Source: Epithemia pelagica
Taxonomy: Eukaryota; Protista; Bacillariophyta
Direction: 5' to 3'
DNA: 64,000 nt
Assembly (NCBI GenBank): GCA_946965045.2
Contig: OX337232.1
Location: forward strand, 2,914,001-2,978,000
Under the pieces are notes generated by a model that saw nothing but the letters and a program-made list of their open reading frames with translations, ran no database searches and was not told the origin of the DNA. Shown in pieces: positions 29,337 to 62,732 of this stretch. A program made the position numbers and the translations under genes. How positions within the stretch are numbered: position 1 is the stretch's first letter; each line of letters opens with the position of its first letter.

Positions 29337-32300
29337 TCACGAGTCTTGATCTAGCTTGTTGAGTGTCGACCACTCGGATGCCAGTTGGTCCATCGTGGGT
29401 GAAGTCGTGGCGGGTTTCGAGGAGACGGATGGATACACGGGCAGTTGCGACGACAAGGTTGGACATGTCGACAAGGACGACGATGCTTCCGGATCGCGGT
29501 TCCTGACGGCCCATTCCTGCGCCAGTTGCTGGGAGGCTTGCGCTGGGTTGGCCATGTCCTGTAGTGAGTGAACCTTGGTCGAAGCTACCGTTTCCACAGT
29601 AGAAGAAGACGGCAGCTCCTTGTCCTTATTTCGTGCCATCCAGTCAGCTTGCAAGTGATCCCTTGTGGCCGTTTCGGATGGCGGTTCCAGGTCCGACAAG
29701 AACGAGTTTGAACCGTCAGCTATAGGGTCGCTGTTGGTTGTTGTTCGAGACGAGGAAAAGGCTGGAGTCCAGGATGGTTGAAATAACTCCGCCACGGCAA
29801 CGGGTGCTCTATCTTCTTGTTCCAGACGGATGGTTGGTTGGGTTTCAGGGTTGTTTGGCGAAATTGGTGGAAAAGGAATGTCATTGGTGACTTGCCGTGG
29901 TTCGGGCGATGCCGACGTCCGTTCCTGGTTTCGTTCCGCCCATTGTTGCGCCAATTCTTGAATCGATGGCGATTTGGTCCGAGAGTTGGGCACTGAGTCA
30001 ACGACGGTTTCTCTTGGTTGTGGCGTGCCCGCATCCGTATAGTCCTTGTTCATGGTATCCCATTCTCGAGCCAGATCTTCAATCGATTGGAGTTCTGGTG
30101 GTGGCGGCATGGTGGATGACGGTAATAGGGTTTCCGGCAGTGTTGTTTGGTCCGGGCCAGTAATTTCTTCGTCCTTGTTTCGTAGGGTCCACTCCCTGGC
30201 CAAATCCTCCATACTGGCGACACTGGGTTTTACAGCAGACACGGTGATGGTTTCGTTGACATCACGGTTGCGTTGGGTCCATTCACGAGCCAAATCGTGC
30301 ATCGACTCGGGAGCGACACTGTGCGCCAGTGGTTGTGGTGGAGATGATGGTGACTCGGAGACTGTTGGTCCCATGGAGCTTGTTGTTGTTGGTGGCGGTG
30401 GAGTCGACTCTTGTCGGACGGCTATGGACAACTGCTGTTGTTGCTGCTGGTTTTCTTGCTGTTGTTGCAGCATGGCTGTCGTGGCTTGTTGCGCACGAAG
30501 GGTTTCCAACACGCCCCATCGGGCATGGCCTTGTAACGCCCATTCGGCCACTTTGTAATTCCGCAATTGAAACAAGACATGGGTCGGTGTGGGTGGAGTG
30601 GACAAGCGTTGGGCCCATTGTGTGACAACCTGGTATCGATCCGGTAAGGAGGAGGAGGAGGAGGAGGATTCCTCGGTGGGAGTCGCCGTCCCTGTGGTTC
30701 TGGATGATGATGATGATGACGATAATGATGAGGGAGGAGAAGCGCTATCACCAGAAGAGGCATTGGTGGAGGCTCGCTGCTTCTCTAGGGTCCATTGTTT
30801 GGTGAAATGGGCCAAGAGTGCCACCGATGTTGGATCAATCATGGCGGGTTCCGTGGCCGCGACAGAATTGTTGGAGGGATGGTCCAAAGTAGGTGGATGA
30901 TTTGGGGTGGAGGTGGATTCCATGGTGGGAGTAGGAGTTGGGGAGGAGGAGGATTCCATAGGAGTCGTTACGGCAGGAGAGGCCGTGACACGCCGTGTAT
31001 CGGACCAATCGACGTGGACCGAAGCCAGACTGGTGCGGTCGTTGTTGTGGTTCGTAATATTGTTGTTGTTGTCCATTTGCGGTTTGGGTTGTTCTTGCTC
31101 TTGTTGTGCCCAGATGCGATTGACCATGGCCGCCGCCTTGTCCAGTGAGGACCGTTGTTTGGTTGGGGGAGCGTCGGTGGTTGTCGTGCCATCAGTTTCT
31201 GGATCTTCTTGCGACGAAGACCAAATGGAATCAATCAAGGATGCTGCTTGGTTCAAGGACGATTCCGAAGAAGAGGTCGCACGACGACGACGACGACGAT
31301 TACTATTGTCCGTGACATCTTTGGCATGCATGTAAACCGGTTTTTCATTGGGAGCCACTGGCATGGTGGACATGCGACTGTTTTGGTACAATTGTTGGGC
31401 ATGACGCTTTTGCATCGCTGCCATGAAGGCTCGTTCTTGTTCATGTTGTTGTCGATACTTTCGGAGCAAGGGATGCTGATTGGTAATCTGCTGTTGCTGC
31501 TGGTGGTTGTCGTTGTCGCTGTTTTTGTTGTTGCTGCCATGTTCTCCAGTGGACTGAGAAGGACCCGAACGACCCTCTTGTTGTTGCTGCTGTAGTGTCG
31601 GTGGTGGTGATGATTCCAGGGCCGCGTCCTTGGCCTTGATGTCATTGTTGGCGGTTTTGTCCTTGCTAATGCGCTGGAGTGCTTCTTGGATCAAGGCATC
31701 CTTTCGTTTCGGATTGTCATCATTTGGAAAGGACTTGGAGAATTTGGTGCTTGTTGTGGGTGGTGATGATTGTGGTGGTGAGGAAGAGGAGGTACGGCGA
31801 TTGGTACTGGTGAAAGTGGTGCGATCCGTTTTGGGTTGGGCCGATTGTTCGAGAGCGGTCAATTCTTGTTCCAATTGATCCAATTCTTGTTGAATGCGGG
31901 TCAAACGAGGCAGCGTCGATTTGGCATGGTGATAATACTCTTCCAGACTTGTCGACGACGACGAAGTGGAGGAACTGGTTGCCGTAGTGTCCGGCACTCG
32001 TGGTTGCTGTGATGGTTGTTTTTGTTGTTGTCGCATGACGTGTCGTTTCAAGGTATCCAACATTTGACCAAGTTCGGCCAGTTCGCGATGATTGTTGTGG
32101 TCGTCCGTATGGTCTCCTCCTCGTCTCTTGTGGAGGTGACACTGGGTCGTCGAGCTGCTACAGTAGCGATGAGCACCACCTTTGGACCCTGTGGAGGACG
32201 CTCCAGTGAATGGGCCATGGCTGTGTGTTTTTTGTCGTTGTTGTCGTGCCAAGAAGGAACCACCAGAAATAGGAATGCTCGAGGAAGAGGAACCTCGAAA

Positions 32301-32429
32301 GATGGGTGGTGGCTGTTGGGAAAAGGCTTGACAGTACCAGACATGACAAGACAAGGATAATGCCACTACGAAGACAGCAACGAAGGAAGAAGCAAATGTT
32401 CCCCCTTTCGTTCTCATGCTCAAATTCAT
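29337..32429 (-). CDS. About 1030-aa low-complexity protein with Trp-motif repeats, probable plastid targeting
   Basis: Single ORF, ATG at 32429. Hydrophobic signal FVAVFVVALSLSCHVWYCQA-F followed by an S/R-rich acid-free stretch. One copy of the DRYQVV..W..R...LRN.KVA..A..G..RWG domain and seven LA.EW...N.D-type motifs. Confidence 0.8.
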   Translation of the reverse strand: MNLSMRTKGGTFASSFVAVFVVALSLSCHVWYCQAFSQQPPPIFRGSSSSSIPISGGSFLARQQRQKTHSHGPFTGASSTGSKGGAHRYCSSSTTQCHLHKRRGGDHTDDHNNHRELAELGQMLDTLKRHVMRQQQKQPSQQPRVPDTTATSSSTSSSSTSLEEYYHHAKSTLPRLTRIQQELDQLEQELTALEQSAQPKTDRTTFTSTNRRTSSSSPPQSSPPTTSTKFSKSFPNDDNPKRKDALIQEALQRISKDKTANNDIKAKDAALESSPPPTLQQQQQEGRSGPSQSTGEHGSNNKNSDNDNHQQQQQITNQHPLLRKYRQQHEQERAFMAAMQKRHAQQLYQNSRMSTMPVAPNEKPVYMHAKDVTDNSNRRRRRRATSSSESSLNQAASLIDSIWSSSQEDPETDGTTTTDAPPTKQRSSLDKAAAMVNRIWAQQEQEQPKPQMDNNNNITNHNNDRTSLASVHVDWSDTRRVTASPAVTTPMESSSSPTPTPTMESTSTPNHPPTLDHPSNNSVAATEPAMIDPTSVALLAHFTKQWTLEKQRASTNASSGDSASPPSSLSSSSSSSRTTGTATPTEESSSSSSSLPDRYQVVTQWAQRLSTPPTPTHVLFQLRNYKVAEWALQGHARWGVLETLRAQQATTAMLQQQQENQQQQQQLSIAVRQESTPPPPTTTSSMGPTVSESPSSPPQPLAHSVAPESMHDLAREWTQRNRDVNETITVSAVKPSVASMEDLAREWTLRNKDEEITGPDQTTLPETLLPSSTMPPPPELQSIEDLAREWDTMNKDYTDAGTPQPRETVVDSVPNSRTKSPSIQELAQQWAERNQERTSASPEPRQVTNDIPFPPISPNNPETQPTIRLEQEDRAPVAVAELFQPSWTPAFSSSRTTTNSDPIADGSNSFLSDLEPPSETATRDHLQADWMARNKDKELPSSSTVETVASTKVHSLQDMANPAQASQQLAQEWAVRNRDPEASSSLSTCPTLSSQLPVYPSVSSKPATTSPTMDQLASEWSTLNKLDQDS

Positions 32430-33022
32430 CGTGTTGTTGTGGCTCTCATGGGGGAATGGTTTCCCAAAATTGGAACGAATGAGAGAGATATCCGAGGGTC
32501 GTTCCAACAAACAGGTGTCTCTCTGACAGAGTGTAGTGACACGGTGCGAGAGGAAGAAAACGAAGGTGTGTGAACAGAGCAGAGTTGTGATCTAGAAAAT
32601 GGCGCGGTAGGGGTGGAATGGCGGTGGTTCTCGCGTCATGGTCGACCTTTCTCGTAATTTCATGGTTTCGACAGACACCTCAAAAACTACCAAACGTTTT
32701 GTACCTTTACTTTTAAACAGAAAATAATGAACATCACATACTCATCACGCTAAAGCTTGAACGACGAGCAGATGGTCTTGGCCAGACAAGTGACTGGAAA
32801 GCGACCCATTGCCACCACTTCGATTTTTCCCGCCATCCTCTTTCGCGCAGGGTCGTCCACGGACATGCGCTGTGAAAACCAATTGCCCTTTCCGAGGCCA
32901 TACACGAAGCGCTTGCCGAGAATTCTTGCTACGGCAGTTCGATCATCGGACCACATTTTGTCGTCATCACACATACCGCGAAGAGACCATTCCACATGTA
33001 CATGCTTCTCGCAAAGAATGTA

Positions 33023-33390
33023 TTAATTCTTGCAGTCATCGTAATCCAAGTCGGGCCCTGGCAGCGTCAGGAGTGGTTTCGGGGTGTTGGACAAGAGAGA
33101 GGAGGTTGGACTGCTGAGGTCATCGTTCTTGCTCTTGCTCTTGTCGTCGTCCTTGTCATCGTTGCTATCGTCCACAGGGACACTGCTTTTCCGGCTTGTT
33201 TGACTCCTGCTGCTAATGCTCCTTCTGCTACAGTCATCATAATCCCATTTCGCTTGGGTATATCCCAAGACGGCGGCCGCTTCGCGCTGTTCGGCATCCA
33301 ATTCTCTCCACTCAAAGTCGGAAATATCCGGTTCCAAATCCTTGTTCCACAGTTTCTTGGTATATCCCAAGAGTGTCGCCGCCGATTGGA
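33023..33390 (-). CDS. MATE transporter, exon 2 (two W.EL....Q.AA..LGY....W repeats)
   Basis: GT-AG intron 33531-33391 (141 nt) joins WDELPPS-V-QSAATLLGYTKKLW in frame. Confidence 0.8.
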
Positions 33391-33531
33391 CTGTCCACCA
33401 CAAGAACAGCACAAGAAGCACAAGAAGAACACCACAACAAGAAACACAACAAGAACAACACAAAGCGGGAACAAACAAGTGTGAGAGAGACACTAGGACA
33501 TTTGGTCCTCGTTTTCAACTCCAAAACGTAC

Positions 33532-36427: not shown

Positions 36428-37374
36428 GCTTCTTGATGGTTTTTGTGGTCTGGTGTTCGGGATGCAAGATGGACTTTGAATGGCCTTCGAAGTTTGCAGG
36501 GAAAAAATGACTGGACTTGAGTTTCGCCCTACGAAAAATTGGAAAACCGACAGTTACGAGATACTCGTAATCCCCCAACACGACATCCATCGGACAGGAT
36601 TAAATACACGTATACACACGTGCTGGACTACAGTAGAATTTTTATCGGGACCACGCCAAGCACGAGGCTGGAGTCATGGGGGTGACCGATCCTTTTAAAT
36701 AGATTAGAATCAGAACAGGTAATCTTGTATGTATTCATAATCCAGCTTGGTCGAGTGACGCGTGCAGGGCCTCTCACTGCGCGACTGAGTTTCAACAATA
36801 AAGCAATAACGGACTAAAGAAATATTAATTTGAACGTTGGTGGAATTCAACGGAAACAGAGCATGTTCATTTCTTGTTCACCGGCGCGCTTGTCATAATT
36901 TGAAGACAAGAGCAAGCGGCGACAAAAATGCGACATAAGGCTACATACTACATACTCCTAGTCCATTACTCAGTACTCCTACTTGGTTGTGGTGATGGTT
37001 AAAATTGGACTATCATGCAAGAGACATACAAAAGTATACAAAATATGTAGGAGTAGGAGTACAAAAAGTGAGGCCAGGCTCCCCTGTTTCAATCCATACT
37101 GCGGCAAACCGAAGCAACCTCACAGGATATTGGGATTCCGTTAACATGCGATTTCTCAGTTCTCCTCATGATCCTGGTTCATTCTAGCCCATTCTTGTGC
37201 CCACTGTTCCGTTGACCTGCCCTGGTCCTGGGGATCGTTCTCCGGGATGGTGTCTGTGGATTCTTCGAAAGAAACGGATGAAGAACAGGAAATAAGAAAT
37301 AAGGTTCACAGAGGTCATATCACACCAAGCGCCTGCTCGTTTCCTCGTTTGTATACAGTCTTGTGTTTTGTGGT

Positions 37375-40300
37375 TTACGTACCTGAAGCAGATTCTTCTT
37401 CCGACGACGAACCAAGAGCCCCACGAACCGCCGATACCCAGTAATTGGCCCGAAGATTCTCCAAGATACCCCACCGTGACTTTCCTTGTGCTGCATAGGA
37501 CGCGACTTTGTGGTTGCGAAGATGGAAAATGACTTGATTCACAGTTGGAGGAACGGGTTCACGTGCCGCCCACTCGAGGACAGTCTCATAGCTGTCGGGC
37601 AATCGTTCCGGCTCCACGTGATCCGATGGTGGCACACCACCCGTTGCATCTTGGTCGCTTTCTTCTGTATAGCTAGTTTTTGACATAGATTCGTCTAAGC
37701 TCTTCGACTCTGCCTCGGTATCAACAAAACCTTCGTCTTGCTCTTCATTTACTGAGATTGACGACTCCGACGAGGGCATGGATGACTCAGACGAGAATGG
37801 GTCTTTCAGCGGTACAGACATGACATCGAAAGCATCACTTTCTCGGTTCATGTCCACCCATTCACGAGCAAATCGTTCCATGGAAGATGTCGATGTATAC
37901 AAGGAAGTGTCGAGTTCCACCGGGTCCACAAATGTGTCCAACTCGTCGTCTTCATTTTCGTCGACTGGAGGTTCATGTTCCTTTGCTTCATGTTGAGCGT
38001 TGGAATCGATTCGTGAGTACGTTGCTGGTTCCGGTATCTTCCTCTCAGCGTTCAAGTTGATCCACTCTTGAGCCAGTTGGTCCATCCATACCCGTTGACT
38101 TTGTGGGAGAGACGATCCGGTGTTTCCCGGTGGCGGGCTTGGAACTGAAGTAGCGTCTTGGTCAGGTTTTGAGTTTGATTTGGCTTTCGGTGTCGACACA
38201 CCAGACGAGGACGAGAAATTATCAGTAGGTGGGCGATTAGGCATTTCGTTCACTTTTTCAGTCATTTGTTCGCTGTTCATTCCCGTCCATTCTTTCGCCC
38301 ATTGATCCATTGACACTGATGGATACCCTTGTTGCGTCGACTGGACGTCACGCTTTTCGGTGGCCCATGTTTCCATAAAGGGGGGAGTAGCAACGTTCGA
38401 CTCTTTGGTGTTTTTGTTCATTGAAGCCCATTCGCGGGCAAGTTGTTCTCCATATGAAGGAGCTTGTGCCGATGAGACCTCAGGTCCATTAGAGGCGACG
38501 GAGCCGCCAATACGCTGTTTATCCGATAAGTTCGTTTGTGAAGCAAGTCCGCTTGGAAATGATGTGCTTTCCGTGGAAGAGCTGTTCTGTTTCCAAGCTT
38601 CCGGTGCTGTGTCTGTATCCAAAGGGGGTGATGACAGATTGCTTGTCTTCTCGCTTTCTTTAGTCTGACCAGTATCTCCTCGTGCCTGAGGCTGCGCTTG
38701 GTTTTGGGATCCACTCCAAGAAGGAAACGAAAATGTCCATCGAATCGAACCAGTACTTTCATCTTGTTGCGTATTGCTCACGGTATTATCACTGACAACT
38801 GATTGAGGAGGAACGTACTGACCACCGGACATTGAGGAGCTCGGAGTAGGTGGATTTAGATCTACACCGTTGTTGGAAGGATCAGATGACAACCCTTCTA
38901 CGGTCGTCTGAGGGGTGCGACCATCCATCTCCCAGTCGAACGAAGGGGCCTTTGTATTCTCATTCTGATCCTCTGTAGGTTTCGAGCCAAACCATGGGAA
39001 ATTAAATCCTGTTTGCGACTGGGGCTTCCTGTTTTCTTCGTTTGTGGGGCGGTCGGAGGCATCCGACCTCGGCTCGCTCAATGAAGGCACATCCCCAGGG
39101 ATTTCGTTGTGATTGGAAGTGTGCGGGGGCACCGTGGAACTTTCTTTGATTTCGTTGACACCAGGCGGCCCTCTGCTAGTTGATGGTGGAAATAATGTGT
39201 TCTGGGACTGGCTACCGAGCCTTTCGTCATCTTTGTCTTGATTTCTACTTGCCCAGTCTTGGCCGATCTGATTGAACGCCGATGACGATGATGCAGCTCC
39301 AGTTGTAGGCTCCGCGGAAAAACTCCATTTTTCTTTGCCCCCATTCTCTCCAATATCTGCTGCATCCCCTGATTTTAATTCAGATGATGAAACTCGTTGA
39401 ACATAGGCTGATAGGTCTGGAAAACGTGGGGATGGATCTTCAGAATCTTGCGCAGTTTGACCCATCGCAGCAAAGTCACGTGCAAGCTGCTCCGTATTCA
39501 TTTGTGATGCTGACAACCCCTGATTAATTTCCGCATTATGAACAGAAGACGAAGCACCGTTCTCATCAGATAGCGTCATTGGTGAAGCCGCAGGAATCGG
39601 TACCGTCGAACCAGTATCACGGTTGCCAGAAGAACTATCTGGTTTCGTTTCTTGTTGGGTGATGGGAGGGTTGTCCGTGAAGAGTCTGTCTTCGTCTTCC
39701 TTCGATTTCTGTGCCTGCTTCCAGAGTCCGCTCCATGGTGAATATTTGTTTTCTGAAGAACTCTCCGGTTTCGTTTCGTCCGCAGAAGGGGACAAATCTG
39801 TTGCCGCTGAGCGTTTCTCCTCTTTTGGATCTTGTGCCTGCTTCCAGTTTCCACTCCATGGTGAATATTTATTTCCTGAAGAACTCTCCGGTTTCGTTTC
39901 GTCCGTGTTAGGACGTCTATTCGCTAACGAAGTGTCTTTATCCTCTTTTAGATCTTGTGGCTGCATCCAGGAGGGTCTACTCCAGGGTGAAGACTCATGT
40001 CCTGAAGAACTCTCCGGTTTCGTTTCGTCCGTGGAAGGTGACAAATCTGTTGCCGATAGGCGTTTCTCTTCTTTTCGATCTTGTGCCTGTTTCCAGTTTC
40101 CACTCCATGGGGAATATTTGCTATCTGAAGAACTCTCCGGTTTCGTTTCATCCGCGGAAGGGGACAAATCTGTTGCCGATGGGCGTCTCTCCTCTTTTGG
40201 ATCTTGTGCCTGCTTCCAGTTTCCACTCCATGGGGAATATTTGCTATCTGAAGGACTCTCCGGTTTCGTTTCGTCCGTCGTAGGACGGCTATTCGTTATC

Positions 40301-43300
40301 GAAGTGTCTTTATCCTCATTTAGATCTTGTGGTTGCATCCAGGAGGTTCTGCTCCATGGCGAAGACTTGTTTCCTGAAGAACTCTCCGGTTTCGTTTCGT
40401 CCGTGGAAGGCGATTTAGCTGTCTCCGATAGGCCTTTGTCATCTCTTGGATCTTGTAGCTGTTTCCAATTTCCACTCCACGGTGAATATTTGTTTTCTGT
40501 CGAGCTCTCCGGTTTCGTTTCGTCCGTGGAAGGTGACAAATCTGTTGCCGATGGGCGTTTCTCCTCTTTTGGATCTTGTGCCTGCTTCCAGTTTCCACTC
40601 CATGGGGAATATTTGCTATCTGAAGAACTCTGTTTTTTCGTTTCGTCCGCGGAAGGTGACAAATCTGTTGCCGATGGGCGTTTCTCCTCTTTTGGATCTT
40701 GTGCCTGCTTCCAGTTTCCACTCCATGGGGAATAATTGCTATCTGAAGAACTCTCCGGTTTCGTTTCATCCGTCGTAGGACGGCTATTCGTTATCGAAGT
40801 GTCTTTATCCTCTTTTAGATCCTGTGGCTGCATCCAGGAGGTTCTGCTCCATGGTGAAGACTTGTTTCCTGAAGAACTCTCCGGTTTCATTTCGTCCGTG
40901 GACAACGATTTAGCTGTCACCGATAGGCCTTTATCATCTCTTGGATCTTGTAGCTGTTTCCAATTTCCACTCCACGGTGAATATTTGTTTTCTGTCGAGC
41001 TCTCCGGTTTCGTTTCGTCCGTGGAAGGTGACAAATCTGTTGCCGATGGGCGTTTCTCCTCTTTTGGATCTTGTGCCTGCTTCCAGTTTCCACTCCATGG
41101 GGAATATTTGCTATCTGAAGAACTCTGTTTTTTCGTTTCGTCCGCGGAAGGTGACAAATCTGTTGCCGATGAGCGTTTCTCCTCTTTTGGATCTTGTGCC
41201 TGCTTCCAGTTTCCACTCCATGGTGAATAGTTATTTCCTGAAGAACTCTCCGGTTCTGGTTTGTTGGTGGTAGGACGGCTATCCGTCAACGAAATGTCGT
41301 CGTCCTGTTTCATGCCTTGTGCCTGGTCCGCGCTTTTACTCCATGGTGAATAGGACATTAGGCCGGCCCATGACCATGTGGGTTTTCCGTTTTCTTCACC
41401 TTCACTGTTTTTAACTGGATCCACGGACGAGTCCGGATTGGTGGATTGAGGACGCACCGAAGACGCCTCAATCTGTCTCTTTCTATCCTTAGAAACGGCT
41501 TCAGATATTTGCGGCGAAGGAAAGAACGGGGAAGGGTCGTTACCACCATCGATGTCTTTTCCTGCTTGCTCCATACCTTGGGCCATCTGGCCGTGCTCAT
41601 ACGATGAAAGCGTGGACTTGTATCCATCGCTATCATTGGAACTTCGTTGGATTTTCATCTCGTCACTTTGGGATGGTTCAGTTGGTAGAATACTTTGACT
41701 TTGGGACCGAGCCTCTGCAGTTGTTGTCACGGCCGCAACAGAGCCGGGCAAGTTCTTTTCGTCGCTGTTGGTGGAAACAGGTTGAGCCCTCATCTGACTA
41801 GTCACGGAAACACTGTCGAGGTCGATAGTTGACTTTTCCTTTTTCTCTGGTATATGTGGAAGGACAGGTTGGTTCGATAAAGTTTCCCCATCACTGCCCT
41901 TGTTCTGACTCATTGAGCTCAGCTCATCAGGTAGATTTCGCGCCGATGTGGGATCAGACGGAACGGAGACATCATCTGAAGATTTTTTCGACATACCTAC
42001 AACGAACCTCTTTGGCCTTGTGGGAGAGATTTTGTCGTCGCCCCTCGAGGTTTCGGAAGGGGGTGGAATACTTTCAATTCCTGCAGCAATCGATGCTTTG
42101 GAGACTTGTTGTGCAATGTCGTTCTCACTGGGGCCCCATCGAGACTTGCCGGCCGTCGCTGCTTTGGCGACCTTCATACTACGACGATGGTACAGGAATG
42201 GACTTGAGCGACCCTGTTTTGAAGTCTCGTCTTTTGAATTCACATCCATAAAGCTCCATGGAGCAACCGTTGATCCGAACTTCCTCACTTCTGTTTCTCC
42301 TCGGGGAGTTGTGGAGGAACTTGGCATCCTACTACCATGTGTGGAGGAACTTGGCATCCTACTTCCAGTGGAGACAACAGCTCCCTGATGTCCGGAGCTT
42401 TGCTTGATGCTGTTCGCGCCCCTAAGAACTCCTGATGATGATCCTCTTCTCTTTGCGTTCACGTTACTCATAGTTTGAGATGTGGATGTCGATGGGATTT
42501 CATGTCGCTTCTGGCCACGAGCAATAGCATCTAAAGTAATTCTTTTCATTTGTTTGTCTTCAGCGCTTTCAGCAGGGCCGAGTTTTCCGTGCATTAACCG
42601 CAAAGGTGCTCCTCGAGAAATCTCCGTACTTCCTCCGTCTGCCTTCCCGATCTGCAAGCTCGGGTCAATATCGGGGACCGTGTTTTGCCCTGGCTGATAT
42701 CGAATGTTTCCATTCGCCATAGCTTCAGCCATCTTTTGCGCTTTTCCATTCTCGGTTGATCCCCATCGCGATTTTCCGACAGAAGCCGCACGGGCTACTT
42801 TGATGGTCCTTTCAAGGTACCACATGAAAGGTGTGTTGGCGGTTGTCTCTGAGGGATCGGGTATGATTCCCTTGTCATCAACTGATTCTGGTGATACTCC
42901 GAAAGCCTCTGGACTTTGAGAACGAGAGGCCTCTTTTTCTTCCAACTTCTTCCACTGTTCAATAGCAGCAATATCACCCATTTTGCTCTGCGAGTTTCGC
43001 GCAGTCATAAGAGCCATTGCCATTACTTTACGGTTTTCCGAATCTCCCCAACGTGATCTTCCTGCCGCTGCAGCTGATGCAACATTCATGTTTCGTAAAT
43101 CAAATAAGGATAGATCGTTCTCCATTTTCTGAGAAGGACCAGGAGACACTGGGTCCTGTGAAATCATTGATGTACCGATATCTTTCAGTGATGGGAATTC
43201 TCGTCTCTTTATTGTTGTCTTCCCGGAGCCTGTTTCGGATGACACGGGCACTTCATTTTCACCTCGGCGTGTTGCTCTTGCAACGATTTCGTCGTCCTCG

Positions 43301-46300
43301 GGTGTCTTCGATGGACTTCCAGTTGTTGCTACAGCTCTAGTTGCATTTGTTGTTGTTCGCTCATCAGGTGAAACATATCGATTCATTCTTTCCGCTGATT
43401 TGACGGGCTTCGAAATGCTGTCCCCGACTCTTAGGCTTGAACCTTCATCTGTACTTTGTGTGTTCTTGCTAAAAGACTTTGTGGTTCTTCCTTCCGGATT
43501 CATATGGAGTTTTTCACTTTTCGTCGGTGAGTCCTCATAATTCGTTGGCTGTACAGACTGTCGGGGAAAGGGCGGTGACGGATCATCGACATCATCTCCT
43601 GATCGACCAGCAGCTTTAATGTCAGAGGCAACTTGCTCATGATTCCAACTGGACGGTGATGAAGAGCCACTCAAAGGTGCTTTTAGCTCGCTTTGAGGAC
43701 CTTGTATCGACGAGACTTCAAGCGAAGGCGCCCTTTCTGGTTGCATTTTTTCGCTGTACGAGGACAGATTTTCCTCTTTGACTCGGTTTACCGTTGGCCC
43801 GTCGCTCAATGAATTGGCCGGGGTATCAGGCAGATTTGGAGGAACATCTGATGAAGATGCCGGTATTGAGTCATTAGAAACCATTGGGAGCGATCCTTCC
43901 ATTTCTTTCGACGACGTACTCAAATTGGCAAGGTCGGATGTATATTGCTGACTGATTTCGTTACTGGCAAACACTGAACGATCAGTTTGGAAAGAAGGTG
44001 TTTCCGTATTTGATGTTTCATCCATGGGGACATTGTCGTGCTCTCTAGTCTCATGGCTTTCTTTCCATGGCGAATACGATATGCTCGCACCTGGTTGATC
44101 CTTGTTGCGTTGGCTGAATGAAGTCCAATCACGCGTAACTTCTTCCATCGTAGAAAATGCCTGTGCTTCGTCCAATGTGTCCTGAGTTTGTGGAAGTTCG
44201 GTGCGTTGCGTGAAAGAGTTGGTAGATGTTTCCATTGGGCTGCTCTGTTCTCCGAAATGAGCGTTGTCCCTGTCATCACCAGAAAGCGTGATGGTCCTGG
44301 CCGTGGTCATTTGGCCATTCGAGTCAATCATACGGTCACGATCCATTTCTTCATCGTGCCACATGTCTGTTGTCACGTCAATGGCCCGTTGGACTTCTGG
44401 AAGGCCCCATCTCGACTTTCCAAACATTGCAGTTTGGGCTACTTTTTGACACCTTAACAAAAACAGCAATTGATTCATGGATGGAGTTACCTTTTGTCGC
44501 TGCGCCCAATACATTACCACTTGGTAGCGATCTGGAAGAATGGTTTGTTCAGCTGAAGTAGAGTCTGCTGACGACTCTTGCCCCAATGTATCACCGAGCG
44601 TATTCAAGATATATTCAAGTATCGTCCATTGTTGAAGAATCGCCCATTGTTTTGGCAGACTCGACAAATCCACCACACCGCTTTCCTCGGCCGCCGTAGC
44701 AACTCCCCATGCCTTGACGGTTGCCCAGCGTTGAGGGACTCGCATCTTAGTTCGGGGAAACACCTGTGGTGGTGGAGGTGTCGTCATAATTGTAGCAATC
44801 GATCGATCAGAAGTAGGATCTAATGATTGCCGTTCGGTTGCGTATAAGCGCATGGCGGCCCACTGCTTGGGAAGTTTACTTCGTCGAACCCAGTCTTGAA
44901 CTCTTTCCCACTGTCTTGGCCTCTTCACCAGCATTTGTGCACCACTAGCGATTGACGAGCCCGACCATTGCTTTTGCAAGTTCTGCGCTTGGTCGGGTCG
45001 TGGACGAACGAGTTGATCCTGATTGAAAGTTTCCCTGGTTATACCATCCAAGCCGCGTCCAGAGTCCTCTTGTGGCCAAGGCTGTCCTTCGTTCATGTCT
45101 CGCATGCTTGTTTTGGGCATTTCTCTGTTCCAGGTCTGTGGTGGTTGCCATGGTTGTTGTTGAGGGACCGTTTCCGTACGAGGTGGTTCCCAATTTTGTG
45201 GTGGCTGCCAAGGTGGTTGTTGAGAAATTTGTTCTTGAGGCACGCTTCGTTTAGCATCTTCCGTACGTGGCGGTTCCCAGCTCTGTGGCCGTTGCCATGG
45301 CTGTTGTTGTGCAAGTTGTTCTTGTGAAACGTCTTGTTGAGTATTTCCGGTGGCTGTGGTGGGCGTTTCCCTGTTCCAATTCTGTGGCGGTTGCCATGGT
45401 GGTTGTTTCGCCATCTGCTCTGGTGAAGCATTTTCCACTGGTGAAGGTGTACTTGATGATGTCTCGCTGTTCCAGTTTTGTGGTGGCTGCCATGGCTGCT
45501 GTTGGGCAACTTGTTGTTGTTGTGGTTGCGTCTTTTCCGGCGGTAGAGGCATGTTCGGTGGTTCCCGGTTCCAAGCTTGTGGGGGTTGCCATGGTTGTTG
45601 TTGTTGCCCAACTTGATCTTGTGGAACTGTTGGTCGACCATCTTGCAGAGGTGATACTTCATTGGTCCTTTCCTGGTTCCAGTCTTGCGAGGGTTGCCAA
45701 GGGGGATCTTGTGGGCCCTTACCTTGTGTTTCTTCCCGAGACACCACGTTGGTCGTTTCTGGGGTTTGTGGTGCAGGTTGCCATGGTTCCGCTCGACGCG
45801 GTTCTTGCGCCTCACTTGGTTGCAGTGTGTTCATCGAAGGCATGCTGGACGTTTCCGTTGCAATGTCTTGAAGAGGCTGTTTCCAAGGAGAGCTGGATAG
45901 TTCTTGTGATTGTTCCATTCGTTGTGTCGCATCGATTGGTTGTGTGTCCACTCCTGGGTTCCGAGCAGAAGGCTGTCCCATAGGATTGCTGTTGAGGTAC
46001 GGCGTAGCCCGAGTATCGTCTTGTCCCTCAATCCCTGGTATCTTCATGGCTGGTACCTCCATTGCTGCTTCGGTTCGTCTTGTGGATGACGTTGCCACAT
46101 CGTCCGTCCGTAGTGGAATTGGATCATCTTCCGGCATTTCCATTTCAGTCACGGCATTCTTCTCCTCTTGTTGCGGTTTCTCTTTTGTGTCCTTCTTGTT
46201 CCTGTTACTGGGCAAGTTGGATAAGACCGAGTCTTTGATGTTGGTCAACATGGACATGGTCATTTTGGGAAGTTCAAACTTGTTTGAAGGTTTCGAAGAT

Positions 46301-49260
46301 GACGATGCTCCCTTGGGAAGAGACGAAGAGAAAGTCGATGATGACGACATGGACCCTGGCTGCTTTACCTCGGTCGTGGATTCGCCGTTCGCTTGTGCGG
46401 TGGTGGCATTGTTCTTGATCCTGCCACCACTCGCAAAGCCATTGGACAAGAAGGAAAAGGACGGGAACAAGCCCGCTTGTTGTTGTTGTTGCTCTTGCGG
46501 CTTTGGTTCCTCATTGTCATTGGTATCCTCCACACCGGGCCAATGCGTGACATCGTCCCAAAATCCTCCAAAGGCAGGGTTGACATTCGCCTTTTGGGTA
46601 GTGGTACTGCTGCCACTGCGCTTGGGCGTCCAGGAGGAAGCCGTCGCCTCGTCCCTCGACGTGGATGCCTTGCTTGGTGAGTTTGTCGCTTCCGTTGTTG
46701 TTGGAGTTGCTTCAATGGTCGGTTCCAGTGGTTTCATTGGATCTGGCACGGCTGACACAGCCGTGGGATCCACCGCCAAAGAATCGGTTTCTCTTGCTTC
46801 CATGGTTGGTTCGACCGGTGTTGCCATTGGTGCTTCCATGGTTGGTTCGACCGGTGTTGCCATTGGGTCTTGCACTGTCATGGAATCCACAGCCGACGTA
46901 TCGGTTTCGGTTGCTCTTTCGGTTGCTCCCATGGTTGGTTCGACCGGCGTTGCCATTGGGTCTGGCACAGCCATGGAATCCACCGCCAGCGTATCGGTTT
47001 CTCTTGCTTCCATGGTTGGTTCGACTGGCGTTACCAGTGGGCTTGGTACAGCCGAGGAATCCAGCGTCGACGTTTCGGTTTGTGGCATGGTCCATGCTAC
47101 CGGTTCCTCTGGTGGCCTTGGTTCCTGGTCCTGGTCGTCATTGGCAACATGCTGGTCCATTGAAACCGCACCCTCCGTGGGCGACAAAGACGACGACATG
47201 GCTCGTTGCAAATCTTGTCGTGTCGGTGGAGTGTCGGGTGGATGAGGAATCCATTGCTCGTTCGTCGTGTTGACCAATCCTGCGTAGTCCATGACGGGAC
47301 TATCTTGTTGCTCGTCGTCATGGTCATTGGGCCTGTCGTTCACTGGCACAGTGTCCTGTTCGAGCAACCTCGTCGTCTTGGATGCCACAGTGGTCTTGTT
47401 GTTATTGTTGTTGTCGTTGGACGAGAGGGGCGCATATTGCTGTTCCGACGGCCATTGCGGTGCTGCTGTCGTCACCGGATCCTTTGTCGTTGGAACGGCT
47501 GCTTCTGTCGTGGTGGCGTTAGTCTTGGATGGATACCAAAAAGCCGTCGCCGCTGTTTCCAAGGCATTGGCCATGGTCGTCATGAGGGACGGTTGTTCTT
47601 GTTGGGTGGTGGTCGTCGTTGCGGATTCCAATACCACCATGTCTTGTGGTTGTTGTTGTTGTTGTTGTTCGGAACGTGAGGAGGAGGCTTCGAGTTCCCC
47701 ACTACCACCACCACCCCCATTGTCGGAATCGTCACGCATCGGACGTGGTCCTTTCCTGGTTGTGAATGGTTCAGAACCATTGTCGTTGGAATCATCTCGA
47801 GTCATGGAGGACAAGTCGCCTTGGGGCAATTTCCTTTCTTCTTTTCCTTCTAGTGCATTGTCGTCATCATCTTGGTCGTCCTGAAACATGATTTGATTCA
47901 AGGAATCCACCAGGGCATCCAATTCGGTTTGCAATTCACCCAATCGTTCCAAGGGTTCCGGCAGTGGCGGTGGCGGCGGACTGGCATCCTTCCATTCAAT
48001 ATCACTAGTGCGACTGGCCGTACTCTGATCCATGTCATCGGCTGGGAGCAAAAACGAAGCGGACGAGGAGACACCATCATTGTTGTTGTTATTGTTGGTA
48101 TCCGTTTTGAAACGGTCCGACAATAAGGATTGTGAGGCGGCTTCAAAAAAGGACTTTTCCCAATCTTGCGACAATTGTCCCAGTTCTTGCAACTCGTCAT
48201 CCACAGACGCTGGAGGAGGAGGAGTGGATTCCAACTCGGATTCGGGTGGTGTGGATGTGGTCGCCGAGGTGCTTGTGGTGGTACTCGCACTAGTAGAACC
48301 ACGGCTGCTTCGTGTATCACTAACGTCTTGTGCTGTTGTGGTTGTTGATGTTGTTGTTGCTTTGGTGGAAGTGGACGAGGAACCAGAGTCTTGAGAAACG
48401 GTGGTTCCGGTCAAGGCACCAAATTGTTGTTGCAAGGCATCCATGTGACGGGCCATGTCGTACAATTGTTCACCCCGTCGTCTCCACCACTCGACCGTGG
48501 CAGTCCCCGTCGTAATGGCCGCCGGTGGTTGTTCCAATTGAAAGACCATGGATTGGACTTGGGTTTGAATGCCCCGAATGCGACTGGCCAAGACGACTGT
48601 GGATTTTGTGGGGTTCTGGTTGTTCGTGTCGGAAGAAGTGACATGGGCCATTTGCGTTTGCAACCATTGTCCCTGTTTCAACAATTCTTGTTGAAATCGA
48701 TTCAAGGAGGCCGCCGCTGCCGCTCGTGTGGCCGGATTGTCGGGGAGAGGTTTTGTGGTTGTCGTTGTCGATGATGATGACGACTTGGAGGAGGAGGATG
48801 CCTTTGTAGATTTGGCCCGTTGCGACAAAGGTGGTGGTGTAACGACCGGAGAGGAATAGGGAGAGGGTTGGGGCGTATCGTAATGCCATGCCTTGTTCCA
48901 GGCCGACGGAATGGGACGCACCTCCAAATCGTCGTCGTCATCATCATCGACAATGGTTGGTTGATTGGAATCCTCATGGGCCCATCGTGTCACACTACGG
49001 TCGAATCTGGTTCCTCGTCTTCTTTTGTTTCGTTGGCGTTGTTGGACCAAGGTGGACGCCACCGTCCTTCGAGTCCATGCTGCTGGTTCGGCCCATTCCA
49101 GTGACGACGATTGATCTGAGCTTTTTCGTCGTGTTATTCTCACAGTGGTGGAGGAAGAGGAAAAGGCCGTGGCCCCTTGTCGGGAGTTGGGTGCCCACCC
49201 CCCAACAACAAGTGTCACGCAAAGAAGCGTCGTGGTCGTGGTGGTTCCCCACACCCGCAT
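37375..49260 (-). CDS. Giant 3961-aa intronless low-complexity protein with several Trp-motif repeat arrays, probable plastid targeting; paralog of 29337-32429
   Basis: 11.9-kb open frame. N-terminus LLCVTLVVGGWAPNSRQGATA-F plus S/T/R-rich stretch. Two full and three half copies of the ..KVA..A..GKSRWG domain; LA.EW...N motifs; tandem arrays. Confidence 0.85.
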   Translation of the reverse strand: MRVWGTTTTTTLLCVTLVVGGWAPNSRQGATAFSSSSTTVRITRRKSSDQSSSLEWAEPAAWTRRTVASTLVQQRQRNKRRRGTRFDRSVTRWAHEDSNQPTIVDDDDDDDLEVRPIPSAWNKAWHYDTPQPSPYSSPVVTPPPLSQRAKSTKASSSSKSSSSSTTTTTKPLPDNPATRAAAAASLNRFQQELLKQGQWLQTQMAHVTSSDTNNQNPTKSTVVLASRIRGIQTQVQSMVFQLEQPPAAITTGTATVEWWRRRGEQLYDMARHMDALQQQFGALTGTTVSQDSGSSSTSTKATTTSTTTTAQDVSDTRSSRGSTSASTTTSTSATTSTPPESELESTPPPPASVDDELQELGQLSQDWEKSFFEAASQSLLSDRFKTDTNNNNNNDGVSSSASFLLPADDMDQSTASRTSDIEWKDASPPPPPLPEPLERLGELQTELDALVDSLNQIMFQDDQDDDDNALEGKEERKLPQGDLSSMTRDDSNDNGSEPFTTRKGPRPMRDDSDNGGGGGSGELEASSSRSEQQQQQQPQDMVVLESATTTTTQQEQPSLMTTMANALETAATAFWYPSKTNATTTEAAVPTTKDPVTTAAPQWPSEQQYAPLSSNDNNNNNKTTVASKTTRLLEQDTVPVNDRPNDHDDEQQDSPVMDYAGLVNTTNEQWIPHPPDTPPTRQDLQRAMSSSLSPTEGAVSMDQHVANDDQDQEPRPPEEPVAWTMPQTETSTLDSSAVPSPLVTPVEPTMEARETDTLAVDSMAVPDPMATPVEPTMGATERATETDTSAVDSMTVQDPMATPVEPTMEAPMATPVEPTMEARETDSLAVDPTAVSAVPDPMKPLEPTIEATPTTTEATNSPSKASTSRDEATASSWTPKRSGSSTTTQKANVNPAFGGFWDDVTHWPGVEDTNDNEEPKPQEQQQQQAGLFPSFSFLSNGFASGGRIKNNATTAQANGESTTEVKQPGSMSSSSTFSSSLPKGASSSSKPSNKFELPKMTMSMLTNIKDSVLSNLPSNRNKKDTKEKPQQEEKNAVTEMEMPEDDPIPLRTDDVATSSTRRTEAAMEVPAMKIPGIEGQDDTRATPYLNSNPMGQPSARNPGVDTQPIDATQRMEQSQELSSSPWKQPLQDIATETSSMPSMNTLQPSEAQEPRRAEPWQPAPQTPETTNVVSREETQGKGPQDPPWQPSQDWNQERTNEVSPLQDGRPTVPQDQVGQQQQPWQPPQAWNREPPNMPLPPEKTQPQQQQVAQQQPWQPPQNWNSETSSSTPSPVENASPEQMAKQPPWQPPQNWNRETPTTATGNTQQDVSQEQLAQQQPWQRPQSWEPPRTEDAKRSVPQEQISQQPPWQPPQNWEPPRTETVPQQQPWQPPQTWNREMPKTSMRDMNEGQPWPQEDSGRGLDGITRETFNQDQLVRPRPDQAQNLQKQWSGSSIASGAQMLVKRPRQWERVQDWVRRSKLPKQWAAMRLYATERQSLDPTSDRSIATIMTTPPPPQVFPRTKMRVPQRWATVKAWGVATAAEESGVVDLSSLPKQWAILQQWTILEYILNTLGDTLGQESSADSTSAEQTILPDRYQVVMYWAQRQKVTPSMNQLLFLLRCQKVAQTAMFGKSRWGLPEVQRAIDVTTDMWHDEEMDRDRMIDSNGQMTTARTITLSGDDRDNAHFGEQSSPMETSTNSFTQRTELPQTQDTLDEAQAFSTMEEVTRDWTSFSQRNKDQPGASISYSPWKESHETREHDNVPMDETSNTETPSFQTDRSVFASNEISQQYTSDLANLSTSSKEMEGSLPMVSNDSIPASSSDVPPNLPDTPANSLSDGPTVNRVKEENLSSYSEKMQPERAPSLEVSSIQGPQSELKAPLSGSSSPSSWNHEQVASDIKAAGRSGDDVDDPSPPFPRQSVQPTNYEDSPTKSEKLHMNPEGRTTKSFSKNTQSTDEGSSLRVGDSISKPVKSAERMNRYVSPDERTTTNATRAVATTGSPSKTPEDDEIVARATRRGENEVPVSSETGSGKTTIKRREFPSLKDIGTSMISQDPVSPGPSQKMENDLSLFDLRNMNVASAAAAGRSRWGDSENRKVMAMALMTARNSQSKMGDIAAIEQWKKLEEKEASRSQSPEAFGVSPESVDDKGIIPDPSETTANTPFMWYLERTIKVARAASVGKSRWGSTENGKAQKMAEAMANGNIRYQPGQNTVPDIDPSLQIGKADGGSTEISRGAPLRLMHGKLGPAESAEDKQMKRITLDAIARGQKRHEIPSTSTSQTMSNVNAKRRGSSSGVLRGANSIKQSSGHQGAVVSTGSRMPSSSTHGSRMPSSSTTPRGETEVRKFGSTVAPWSFMDVNSKDETSKQGRSSPFLYHRRSMKVAKAATAGKSRWGPSENDIAQQVSKASIAAGIESIPPPSETSRGDDKISPTRPKRFVVGMSKKSSDDVSVPSDPTSARNLPDELSSMSQNKGSDGETLSNQPVLPHIPEKKEKSTIDLDSVSVTSQMRAQPVSTNSDEKNLPGSVAAVTTTAEARSQSQSILPTEPSQSDEMKIQRSSNDSDGYKSTLSSYEHGQMAQGMEQAGKDIDGGNDPSPFFPSPQISEAVSKDRKRQIEASSVRPQSTNPDSSVDPVKNSEGEENGKPTWSWAGLMSYSPWSKSADQAQGMKQDDDISLTDSRPTTNKPEPESSSGNNYSPWSGNWKQAQDPKEEKRSSATDLSPSADETKKQSSSDSKYSPWSGNWKQAQDPKEEKRPSATDLSPSTDETKPESSTENKYSPWSGNWKQLQDPRDDKGLSVTAKSLSTDEMKPESSSGNKSSPWSRTSWMQPQDLKEDKDTSITNSRPTTDETKPESSSDSNYSPWSGNWKQAQDPKEEKRPSATDLSPSADETKKQSSSDSKYSPWSGNWKQAQDPKEEKRPSATDLSPSTDETKPESSTENKYSPWSGNWKQLQDPRDDKGLSETAKSPSTDETKPESSSGNKSSPWSRTSWMQPQDLNEDKDTSITNSRPTTDETKPESPSDSKYSPWSGNWKQAQDPKEERRPSATDLSPSADETKPESSSDSKYSPWSGNWKQAQDRKEEKRLSATDLSPSTDETKPESSSGHESSPWSRPSWMQPQDLKEDKDTSLANRRPNTDETKPESSSGNKYSPWSGNWKQAQDPKEEKRSAATDLSPSADETKPESSSENKYSPWSGLWKQAQKSKEDEDRLFTDNPPITQQETKPDSSSGNRDTGSTVPIPAASPMTLSDENGASSSVHNAEINQGLSASQMNTEQLARDFAAMGQTAQDSEDPSPRFPDLSAYVQRVSSSELKSGDAADIGENGGKEKWSFSAEPTTGAASSSSAFNQIGQDWASRNQDKDDERLGSQSQNTLFPPSTSRGPPGVNEIKESSTVPPHTSNHNEIPGDVPSLSEPRSDASDRPTNEENRKPQSQTGFNFPWFGSKPTEDQNENTKAPSFDWEMDGRTPQTTVEGLSSDPSNNGVDLNPPTPSSSMSGGQYVPPQSVVSDNTVSNTQQDESTGSIRWTFSFPSWSGSQNQAQPQARGDTGQTKESEKTSNLSSPPLDTDTAPEAWKQNSSSTESTSFPSGLASQTNLSDKQRIGGSVASNGPEVSSAQAPSYGEQLAREWASMNKNTKESNVATPPFMETWATEKRDVQSTQQGYPSVSMDQWAKEWTGMNSEQMTEKVNEMPNRPPTDNFSSSSGVSTPKAKSNSKPDQDATSVPSPPPGNTGSSLPQSQRVWMDQLAQEWINLNAERKIPEPATYSRIDSNAQHEAKEHEPPVDENEDDELDTFVDPVELDTSLYTSTSSMERFAREWVDMNRESDAFDVMSVPLKDPFSSESSMPSSESSISVNEEQDEGFVDTEAESKSLDESMSKTSYTEESDQDATGGVPPSDHVEPERLPDSYETVLEWAAREPVPPTVNQVIFHLRNHKVASYAAQGKSRWGILENLRANYWVSAVRGALGSSSEEESASGT
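39640..41360 (-). repeat. Coding tandem repeat, 13 units of 123/126 bp (41/42 aa, KYSPWSGNWKQAQDP...) with 495-bp higher-order period
   Basis: SPW anchor recurs at about 41219, 41096, 40973, 40850, 40724, 40601, 40478, 40355, 40229, 40106, 39983, 39857 and 39734; a degenerate 14th unit lies at 41342. Confidence 0.9.
45080..45770 (-). repeat. Coding repeat of about nine (Q/P)PWQPPQ.W(N/E) motifs
   Basis: EPWQPAPQ, PPWQPSQDWN, QPWQPPQAWN, QPWQPPQNWN, PPWQPPQNWN, QPWQRPQSWE, PPWQPPQNWE, QPWQPPQTWN, QPWPQ. Confidence 0.85.
46740..47050 (-). repeat. Coding repeat of about five (DP)MATPVEPTMEA units
   Basis: Repeated CATGGTTGGTTCGACCGG on the + strand. Confidence 0.8.
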
Positions 49261-56400: not shown

Positions 56401-56511
56401 CCGTTGTTTCAACAATCCGATTTCCCTTTCGGCCTTGTGATTCTGCTTACCAGTCCCTTTTTCTGCCCAATGCATGCCGATGCGGTGGTAGCGGGATAGC
56501 TTGTGAAACAA
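53473..56511 (-). pseudogene. pol: pol of element C (integrase C-half, chromo-like segment, RT, RNase H)
   Basis: QNHKAEREI, RLWDY, HMVFDIKMDLTRKARLVAGG, YVDD intact; RNase H VDADHAG, SFGSKF (E to K), CDN, ADLFTK. Frameshifted from the upstream part at a G-run near 56520. Confidence 0.9.
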
Positions 56512-59957: not shown

Positions 59958-60531
59958 ATGAGCGATCCGGTCGTTTGGAAGCATATTGGATTGCACGGCG
60001 ATGCGGTGGGCACCTTTGTGTGCGAAGAGCATCGGATTGTTTGGAAATCAGCCATTACCGGTGGATCCAATGACGATATCGCCATGGCCATGACACGAAG
60101 TCTACCCGCCAAGGCATTGAAACGTGCCTATTGGACCATCGTGGGGCAATCGGGCCATGTTCGAATTCAAACCACCGGAGAAAATCTCAAACATGAATAT
60201 CGGTTTGATGGCTTTCCTCTCAAAGATATGCAAGTACTGGAACGAGCCTTGCAAGAACGCTACAGCATTTCCTTGACACCCCTCAATTTATCGGCTTCGG
60301 GAGCGCAATATGGATTGACCAATGTATCTCGAAAAAATCTTGTCTTTCGTCATTGTGTCTTGGACGAAATGAATGAAGAGGGACAAGAATTTGAACCACG
60401 CGCCGAAGATGAAATGATGTCCCTCGATTTGGCTGAAGTGAGTCAATGTGTCTTGCCCGGTAACAATCGGAATGAAATTGAAGTCCAATTTCCCGAATCC
60501 GATGCCGTCGAAGCCGGAACCGATCAATTGG
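59958..60531 (+). CDS. SSRP1: FACT complex subunit SSRP1, exon 1
   Basis: ATG at 59958; YRFDGFP, MSLDLAEVSQC...NRNEIEVQF; donor GTACGT at 60532. Confidence 0.85.
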
Positions 60532-60676
60532 GTACGTTCTGGTCTGTCGTTTTGGTTGTTGTGTGGTAAAATGGTGCCTGTGGACGAAGGATGTCTCGAT
60601 TCTCATGAATGGATCCGGATTTCATTCTTGCATATTGCGGCTCTTCATTCTTTTTGTCTTTTTGTTACTGTTGCAG

Positions 60677-62645: not shown

Positions 62646-62732
62646 GTAAGTGCTGGGTAGATGGATGCGGTTTTGTGCGTGTGGGAAGGAATGCAATCTT
62701 TACTAAAACCTTGATACTCCCTCTTTCTTCAG

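Follow-up and report, generated by a model that had tools for sequence, protein, structure and literature searches.

Genes A and B in the window

The stretch of 64,000 nucleotides (nt) of the diatom Epithemia pelagica analysed here (assembly GCA_946965045.2, contig OX337232.1, positions 2,914,001 to 2,978,000; hereafter the window) carries two minus-strand genes, A and B, whose products are strong candidates for organising the carbon-fixing pyrenoid. Both open reading frames (ORFs) of the initial annotation were recovered, A with 1030 amino acids (aa) from its first ATG and B with an ORF of 3961 codons at 37375-49260. A MatE-type transporter gene lies between them, and all three genes are on the minus strand in the order B-MatE-A. 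The 1030-aa product of A was also present in a protein collection (P0001). The description of the two as paralogues was borne out by a blastp alignment of A595-653 with B3887-3945 (52.5% identity, E 6e-17). Three weaker alignments matched A to other parts of B, and one of them (A522-658 vs B1521-1638) included a KQW element just upstream of the shared domain. Overall, A and B were confirmed as real, conserved, paralogous genes. Their features are listed in Table 1.

The computed composition of the two proteins (S 14-15%, T 9-10%, P about 9%, Q 7-9%) agreed with the S/T/Q/P-rich character first noticed. No Pfam match above the gathering cut-off was found in A, B and eight relatives. In a hydropathy scan the N-terminal segment alone was hydrophobic in both proteins, and a role as membrane tether was rejected because neither has a hydrophobic segment past the signal peptide.

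Table 1. Features of genes A and B and of the transporter gene between them (positions in the window)
Feature	Position	Strand	Basis or remark
Gene B	49260 down to 37156	minus	ORF, translation, spliced model
B presequence	48976..49260	minus	short hydrophobic core, ATA/F, then S/T/R-rich stretch
B exon 1	37383..49260	minus	codons 1-3959 and first base of codon 3960
B, seven PWQPPQ.W repeats	45106..45723	minus	aa 1180-1385; pattern positions
B, four LP[KR]QWA-type motifs	44611..44928	minus	aa 1448-1550; upstream of first KSRWG domain
B, long-form KSRWG domain 1	44341..44541	minus	aa 1574-1640; 116.5 bits
B, three short-form KSRWG repeats	42091..43143	minus	aa 2040-2085, 2135-2180, 2345-2390
B, 14 tandem copies of 41-aa unit	39616..41385	minus	core YSPWSGNWKQ; TRF and protein listing
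B, five LA.EW...N helices	37834..39288	minus	aa 3325-3344, 3600-3619, 3647-3666, 3722-3741, 3790-3809; profile, six-frame scan
B, long-form KSRWG domain 2	37408..37605	minus	aa 3886-3951; best blastp match to A; 105.5 bits
B intron	37263..37382	minus	120 nt, GT..AG; holds apparent stop 37375-37377; sequence and RNA contig
B exon 2	37156..37262	minus	35 residues; stop 37156-37158; C-terminal EW...N motif at 37159-37215
MatE-type transporter gene	36427-33515	minus	Pfam MatE, 8.5e-38
Gene A	32429-29337	minus	single-exon coding sequence, 1030 aa; stop codon 29337-29339
A bipartite presequence	32130..32429	minus	CQA/F signal end, then S/T/R-rich; hydropathy and composition, by eye
A conserved helical, coiled-coil-like island	31830..31949	minus	aa 161-200; conservation vs P0142, P0112
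A degenerate KQW motif and long-form KSRWG domain	30450..30812	minus	aa 540-660; blastp vs B, alignments A1 and A3, AlphaFold2
A, seven LA.EW...N helices	29343..30311	minus	aa 707-726, 737-756, 780-799, 820-839, 920-939, 964-983, 1010-1029

The LA.EW...N motif in A and B

A repeated LA.EW...N motif had been claimed for both proteins and was confirmed by two counts. The simple pattern [ED]W...N occurred 6 times in A and 6 times in B, compared to shuffle means of 0.08 and 0.69. A profile built from 64 instances of the A/B family, with PYCO1 sequences excluded, matched A in 7 copies at 15.8-26.8 bits and spliced B in 6 copies at 17-24 bits (20.4 bits for the C-terminal copy encoded by exon 2). 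The same profile gave 0 matches of at least 10 bits in 1.6 M shuffled residues. The consensus over thirteen proteins with the KSRWG domain was S-[MI]-[DE]-[QD]-L-A-[RKQ]-E-W-[ATSG]-[AS]-[MR]-N-[KQR]-[DE].

AlphaFold2 modelling of A695-1030 with three orthologous sequences predicted seven isolated helices, each on a motif (710-727, 737-753, 783-798, 823-838, 919-935, 962-976 and 1013-1029), the seventh lying at the C-terminus. The predicted local distance difference test (pLDDT) score was 72-86 within the helices (10-residue block means, blocks inside the helix) and <50 between them. In an alignment of A with its orthologues P0142 (Epithemia clementina) and P0112, above-background identity was confined to the island at aa 161-200 (0.42-0.50 against a background of about 0.15), the KSRWG domain, most of the motifs and, weakly, the presequence. 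The proposed sticker-and-spacer organisation is therefore supported by computation, with helices predicted on the seven motifs of A, disorder predicted between them, and orthologue conservation confined to motifs and domain.

Splicing and transcription of gene B

Both genes were first called intronless, which held for the single-exon coding sequence of A and failed for B, where a 120-nt GT..AG intron was found together with a spliced RNA contig. A six-frame motif scan detected a further in-frame motif copy just past the stop of the B ORF. The donor site reads cag/GTACGT, the apparent stop sits three bases after the donor, and the AG at 37263 closes a tract rich in pyrimidines. Splicing from 37383 to 37262 preserves the frame and yields a protein of 3994 aa and 438 kDa that ends in the motif copy, which replaces the earlier size of 3961 aa. 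A contig from a metatranscriptome RNA library (X1) joined 37262 to 37383 exactly, with the 120 nt skipped and with CT..AC ends on the plus strand. This joint is direct evidence that B is transcribed and processed in nature. Three more contigs of this library lay on exon 1 (37882-38119, 38436-38655 and 40394-40565), and the runs X2-X4, which resembled genomic DNA, carried the unspliced form at the intron.

The tandem array of B was reported by TRF with a period of 123 nt and 12.5 copies. Short-read contigs of X2 and X4 break within this array, so that the count of 14 copies is that of the window sequence alone. The Epithemia clementina orthologue of B has 11-12 copies with the core FSPWGGNWKQ or FSPWGQSWMQ, and the spacer is not kept. 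In the same orthologue PWQ had three matches at other positions, in a repeat different from PWQPPQ.W. For LP[KR]QWA, 3 copies were found at the equivalent place in P0002, P0004 and P0007 (Entomoneis, Epithemia and P0007 relatives). The short-read assemblies of X2-X4 were fragmented at 39838-41200, where X2 and X4 had bins without coverage, and scattered single-base differences between X2-X4 and the window suggest strain or allele variation. Two plus-strand ORFs within B, at 39623-40735 (370 aa) and 45944-47245 (433 aa), were rejected as genes and are probably by-products of the coding-strand repeats and skewed composition.

Match of the motif to the Rubisco-binding helix of PYCO1

PYCO1 of Phaeodactylum tricornutum (Phatr3_J49957; Oh et al. 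2023, PMC10288592) is plastid-addressed, as A and B probably are; like them it is mostly disordered and has LA.EW.(S/A)MN helices, one of them at the very C-terminus. Cryo-electron microscopy of a PYCO1 fragment on Rubisco placed the KWSPRGGS sticker on the small subunit, while the sequence AAEWGSMNQ near the C-terminus was helical and lay in a hydrophobic cleft of the large subunit (PMC10288592). In that structure W580 sits in a pocket of F102, F104, L361, F366 and F482 and also bonds D92, and N584 hydrogen-bonds Y89 (PMC10288592). A second similar motif, ASEWASMNT, lies upstream of AAEWGSMNQ; the motif peptides NLAAEWGSMNQ and NLASEWASMNT were predicted to be helical by those authors, and the flanked motifs given in the supplement are NLASEWASMNTEK and NLAAEWGSMNQGD, with NLAAEWGSMNQGD six residues from the protein end (PMC10288592).

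The comparison with PYCO1 was made on the short peptides printed in PMC10288592 and its supplement. On these, the A/B family profile gave 27.1 and 21.8 bits for the two PYCO1 helices and -1 for the KWSPRGGS sticker. The match spans 9-11 residues (L, A, E, W, small, small, M, N, polar/acidic). The 64 profile instances had been picked by a pattern requiring W and N, and a recount was therefore anchored on L[AS]..W only. In this recount N was present at W+4 in 65/79 instances, E at W-1 in 59/79 and M at W+3 in 37/79. Since N at W+4 was kept under this anchoring, the Trp and Asn(i+4) that make the structural contacts of PYCO1 are the conserved ones in the family. A motif copy also stands at the extreme C-terminus of A, spliced B and most relatives, as in PYCO1. 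Searches of the PDB by sequence, with the C-terminal part of A and with the motif profile, retrieved no PYCO1 chain.

Judged by its residues, LA.EW..MN is the same motif as the large-subunit-binding helix of PYCO1. The initial annotation had seen no exact match between these motifs and known Rubisco-binding motifs; this was overturned, as LA.EW...N corresponds to the second, large-subunit sticker of PYCO1, which was missed because the comparison had been made with KWSP only. The link to the pyrenoid is accordingly stronger than was first thought.

The likeness did not extend to PYCO1 as a whole. KWSP occurred 0 times in A and B, and W[ST]P occurred once in each, at or below the shuffle expectation. 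GTGYNP and G.GY.P occurred 0 times, there was no 80-aa repeat, and the tandem repeats present are unrelated 41-aa units. PYCO1 has 2 helix copies compared to 6-7 in A and B, which are 2-7 times longer and carry extra modules (the KSRWG domain, LP[KR]QWA and the SPWSGNWKQ array) without overall sequence homology. Homology to PYCO1 as a whole (Phatr3_J49957 or J40791) was thus rejected on the lack of KWSP and GTGYNP, the acidic charge and the different repeats. The EPYC1-type motif [DN]W[RK]xx[LIVA] was also rejected, with 0 matches in A and B.

The KSRWG domain and its relatives

The shared domain, first described as roughly 50 aa long, was present by blastp and AlphaFold2 as a KSRWG three-helix module of about 60 aa. 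Inspection anchored on RWG gave six copies, one in A and five in B, of which three were long and three short. The long form reads LP.(R)Y..V..WA ... F.LRN.KVA..A..GKSRWG..EN.RA and the short form is its second half alone. With 15 long-form copies as alignment, AlphaFold2 predicted a three-helix module with a mean pLDDT of 88.5. A Foldseek search of the domain model against the PDB gave no meaningful match (best E-value 4), and full-text literature searches with KSRWG, GKSRWG and SRWG returned unrelated papers only.

The six-copy profile detected 196 matches at E ≤1e-3 and 156 at E ≤1e-10 among 1.84 billion representative proteins, so the relatives number at least 196 clusters. A word search placed KSRWG relatives in pennate and centric diatoms (Cylindrotheca, Pseudo-nitzschia, Nitzschia, Odontella, Chaetoceros and Dactyliosolen), all of them named 'hypothetical'. 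These diatom proteins share the F/Y..RN.KVA.AA.AGKSRWG..E repeat and the signal/F presequence with A and B, whereas most of them are 200-650 aa long, contain 2-9 repeats of the short form and differ in their conserved N-terminal region. The [ED]W...N motif matched in only 15 of the 150 best KSRWG-search matches, A and B included, and the long form with its LP.(R)Y..V..WA extension was seen in A- and B-like proteins only.

Presequences and probable plastid address

Both N-termini showed the arrangement first claimed for them, a hydrophobic signal ending in A/F (CQA/F in A, ATA/F in B) followed by an S/T/R-rich, acid-poor stretch. The 40 residues after the F contained 11 S+T, 4 K+R and 0 D+E in A, which has a hydrophobic core, and 16 S+T, 6 K+R and 3 D+E in B. 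Of 107 relatives with a hydrophobic N-terminus, 54, from many diatoms, showed a signal followed by F, W or Y at +1 by a crude rule of our own. The ASAFAP rule is the plastid-import signal of diatoms, and presequences of the signal/F/W/Y type fit it. The proposed plastid address is thus probable, given a putative signal peptide with an aromatic residue at +1 that recurs among the relatives, and we infer from these N-termini that A and B are imported into the stroma.

A different destination was considered for comparison, in which the signal peptide would lead to the endoplasmic reticulum and the silica deposition vesicle. A and B would then be low-complexity proteins that are secreted or belong to the cell wall, associated with the frustule in the manner of cingulins or silaffins. 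The signal peptide at the N-terminus, the low complexity with much S, T and P and the repeats rich in Trp would suit such proteins, and cingulins include Trp-rich types. However, A, B and many relatives have an aromatic residue after the predicted cleavage site and then an acid-poor S/T/R stretch, the motif is a specific match to a Rubisco-binding helix of the stroma, and the modules are fused to an iota-carbonic anhydrase that is probably plastid-addressed (below). In addition, K..K was within the shuffled range (A, 1 vs a mean of 1.1; B, 19 vs a mean of 9.9 and a maximum of 22) and RXL was below expectation in both proteins. A silaffin- or cingulin-type identity was rejected on these two counts, and a cell-wall location as a whole appears very improbable.

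Relatives, third paralogue and iota-carbonic anhydrase

Relatives of the large proteins were found in the raphid pennates Epithemia clementina, Entomoneis paludosa and Amphora coffeiformis, and a mid-size KSRWG protein in Nitzschia. Besides this genome, the helix-bearing family, with its 6-16 motif copies, is conserved at least in Epithemia and Entomoneis. The orthologues of A and B in Epithemia clementina have the locus tags 004078 and 004080, and a MatE gene (L002 3290-6946) lies directly upstream of the A orthologue. This is consistent with the order B-MatE-A in that species, as read from the locus tags, with the B orthologue outside the locus viewed.

A third paralogue of 1882 aa (P0071) was identified on the same 1.49-Mb contig (L001 10001-15649). 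It has 16 LAR[EA]WGAMN-type copies alternating with degenerate KSRWG (ETRWG) repeats. Ala replaces Glu before the Trp in five of these copies, and the called N-terminus begins about 110 residues ahead of a hydrophobic stretch, so that the start may be mis-called. P0071 lies about 2 kb upstream of two CaMKII_AD/SnoaL_3 genes (L001 17634-19862 and 22098-25649), which are of the iota-carbonic anhydrase type, the CaMKII_AD domain being typical of these enzymes. The product of the first carries, by inspection, a signal/F presequence, and its enzyme domain is preceded by two KSRWG repeats, by several copies of LP[KR]QWAALR and by a tandem repeat of three units whose core is RRVLTGGNTALPPSTTP.

Two mid-size metagenome proteins, P0125 (546 aa) and P0013 (628 aa), have N-terminal KSRWG repeats followed by EW...N helices, 6 in P0125 (56-75 aa apart, with proline-rich spacers) and 3 in P0013. 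Both end in NDW.RLAQEWM.TN.DKD. By this geometry P0125 and P0013 look more linker-like than A or B.

Other genes in the window

The best MatE match of the gene between A and B begins at residue 729 of 970, leaving a long N-terminal part without transporter match. The gene pair is flanked by retroelement-rich stretches, with RVT_2 (copia-type reverse transcriptase) matches in ORFs at 10884-13154 (plus strand) and 53473-56511 (minus strand). A further gene at 60448-62649 (plus strand) is SSRP1/FACT-like, with SSRP1 PH and Rtt106-like middle domains and three HMG boxes, and looks like an ordinary housekeeping gene.

Interpretation

We consider it moderately probable that A and B are soluble and mostly disordered, enter the plastid by import and serve as multivalent scaffolds or tethers for the pyrenoid and the CO2-concentrating machinery, where Rubisco binding and pyrenoid location are inferred. 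Each LA.EW..MN element would fold into a short amphipathic helix that docks on the Rubisco large subunit, with its Trp in the pocket and the Asn four residues on forming a hydrogen bond. As each single contact would be weak, the 6-7 copies per chain on flexible spacers would bind by avidity. The KSRWG domain and the LP[KR]QWA motifs, both also carried by the iota-carbonic anhydrase near P0071, and the 14 SPWSGNWKQ units of B probably recruit more partners or self-associate.

Several points weigh against this interpretation. The presequences of A and B were judged by eye from hydropathy and composition, and those of the relatives by the crude rule in place of a formal predictor. The hydrophobic core of B is short and weak, with an 11-residue Kyte-Doolittle mean that peaks at 2.2 and no 19-residue window that reaches 1.4. 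The X1 contigs were 95-99% identical to the window and hence derive from a closely related organism. Conservation of the binding pocket in the Rubisco of this species is an assumption. A and B are acidic (computed isoelectric points of 6.11 for A and 4.73 for spliced B), whereas the linkers EPYC1 and PYCO1 are basic (isoelectric point of about 10 for PYCO1), and the motif flanks are acidic as well. The PYCO1 helix itself binds weakly, as a fragment with both copies gave no Rubisco shift on native polyacrylamide gel electrophoresis (PMC10288592). Finally, the iota-carbonic anhydrase LCIP63 is discussed in the Nam et al. preprint with carbon transport across chloroplast membranes and not as a pyrenoid-matrix protein, and modules held in common with iota-carbonic anhydrase need not mean a location in the matrix.

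The last two points also favour a rival explanation, in which the proteins are plastid-targeted and the motifs serve a partner other than Rubisco, such as the pyrenoid shell, thylakoid or envelope carbon-transport complexes or an iota-carbonic anhydrase assembly, and the likeness to PYCO1 is that of a generic Trp-anchored amphipathic helix. The KSRWG and LP[KR]QWA modules on the iota-carbonic anhydrase and the KSRWG-repeat proteins of centric diatoms without PYCO1 would fit such a partner. On the other hand, the match extends over 9-11 residues at 22-27 bits and includes both contact residues, and the C-terminal placement in common with PYCO1 also argues for a common function. We regard a non-Rubisco partner as rather unlikely.

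For the Rubisco-binding scaffold or tether, the role could be that of an organiser, of a client or of the linker itself. In the last case A and/or B, or mid-size relatives such as P0125 and P0013, would condense the pyrenoid matrix of these diatoms as its primary Rubisco linker, in the role of PYCO1. The multivalency of the family (6 motifs spaced 56-75 aa in P0125, 16 copies in P0071), the 14 regularly spaced 41-aa Trp units of B and the lack of PYCO1 conservation outside Phaeodactylum would suit a linker. However, known linkers are basic whereas A and B have an acidic net charge, the motif spacing of A and B is irregular, B at 438 kDa is far above any known linker, and the PYCO1 helix by itself does not drive condensation. 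Given the charge, size and spacing, a primary linker seems improbable. Because A and B are acidic and have neither the small-subunit nor the self-association stickers of PYCO1, they would rather be organisers or clients, comparable to the Rubisco-binding-motif proteins of Chlamydomonas, and are less likely to be the main phase-separating linker.

In Chlamydomonas the short helical motif of the linker EPYC1 is reused in several copies in large pyrenoid-organising proteins (SAGA1, SAGA2, RBMP1, RBMP2 and others), as may be the case for A and B. The motif there is unrelated and binds the green-type small subunit and not the form ID large subunit; the likeness is no more than an analogy. CsLinker of Chlorella sorokiniana (Barrett et al. 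2024, PMC11570498) is likewise disordered with repeated helices, which in CsLinker bind the Rubisco large subunit; unlike A and B it is basic, small and regularly spaced, belongs to the green lineage and has no sequence relation to them.

Oh et al. 2023 noted that variants of the helix occur in other Phaeodactylum proteins, without listing them, and suggested that the weaker large-subunit helix might be a shared pyrenoid sticker (PMC10288592). PYCO1 is restricted to Phaeodactylum, and its main sticker is found in no other protein (PMC10288592; Nam et al. preprint). Beyond that one sentence of Oh et al., no description of the A/B family, the KSRWG repeat or LP[KR]QWA was found in the literature outside subscription journals. 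The suggestion of an undescribed family therefore stands as to the lack of a description, and is limited by the earlier mention of helix variants. What is new is the setting of a known binding motif, a multi-module architecture of much greater size, and the two undescribed modules that accompany it.

Diatoms fix roughly a fifth of global CO2, and PYCO1 is the only structural Rubisco-binding protein known there. The A/B family, linked both genomically and architecturally to iota-carbonic anhydrase, offers concrete proteins and three profile-searchable motifs with which to test the idea of a shared sticker. It also allows pyrenoid components to be sought in diatom proteomes and the organisation of pyrenoids to be studied in diatoms that lack PYCO1. 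A wider reading, which is tentative and on present evidence doubtful, is that the LA.EW..MN helix serves raphid pennates in general as the motif for Rubisco binding and pyrenoid addressing, as a counterpart to the motif of Chlamydomonas. With KSRWG and LP[KR]QWA it would connect giant scaffolds, linker-like proteins of middle size and an iota-carbonic anhydrase in a single network for the pyrenoid and carbon concentration. If this were true, the KSRWG repeat, present in centric diatoms without PYCO1, would become a candidate for the Rubisco or shell sticker that is missing in them.

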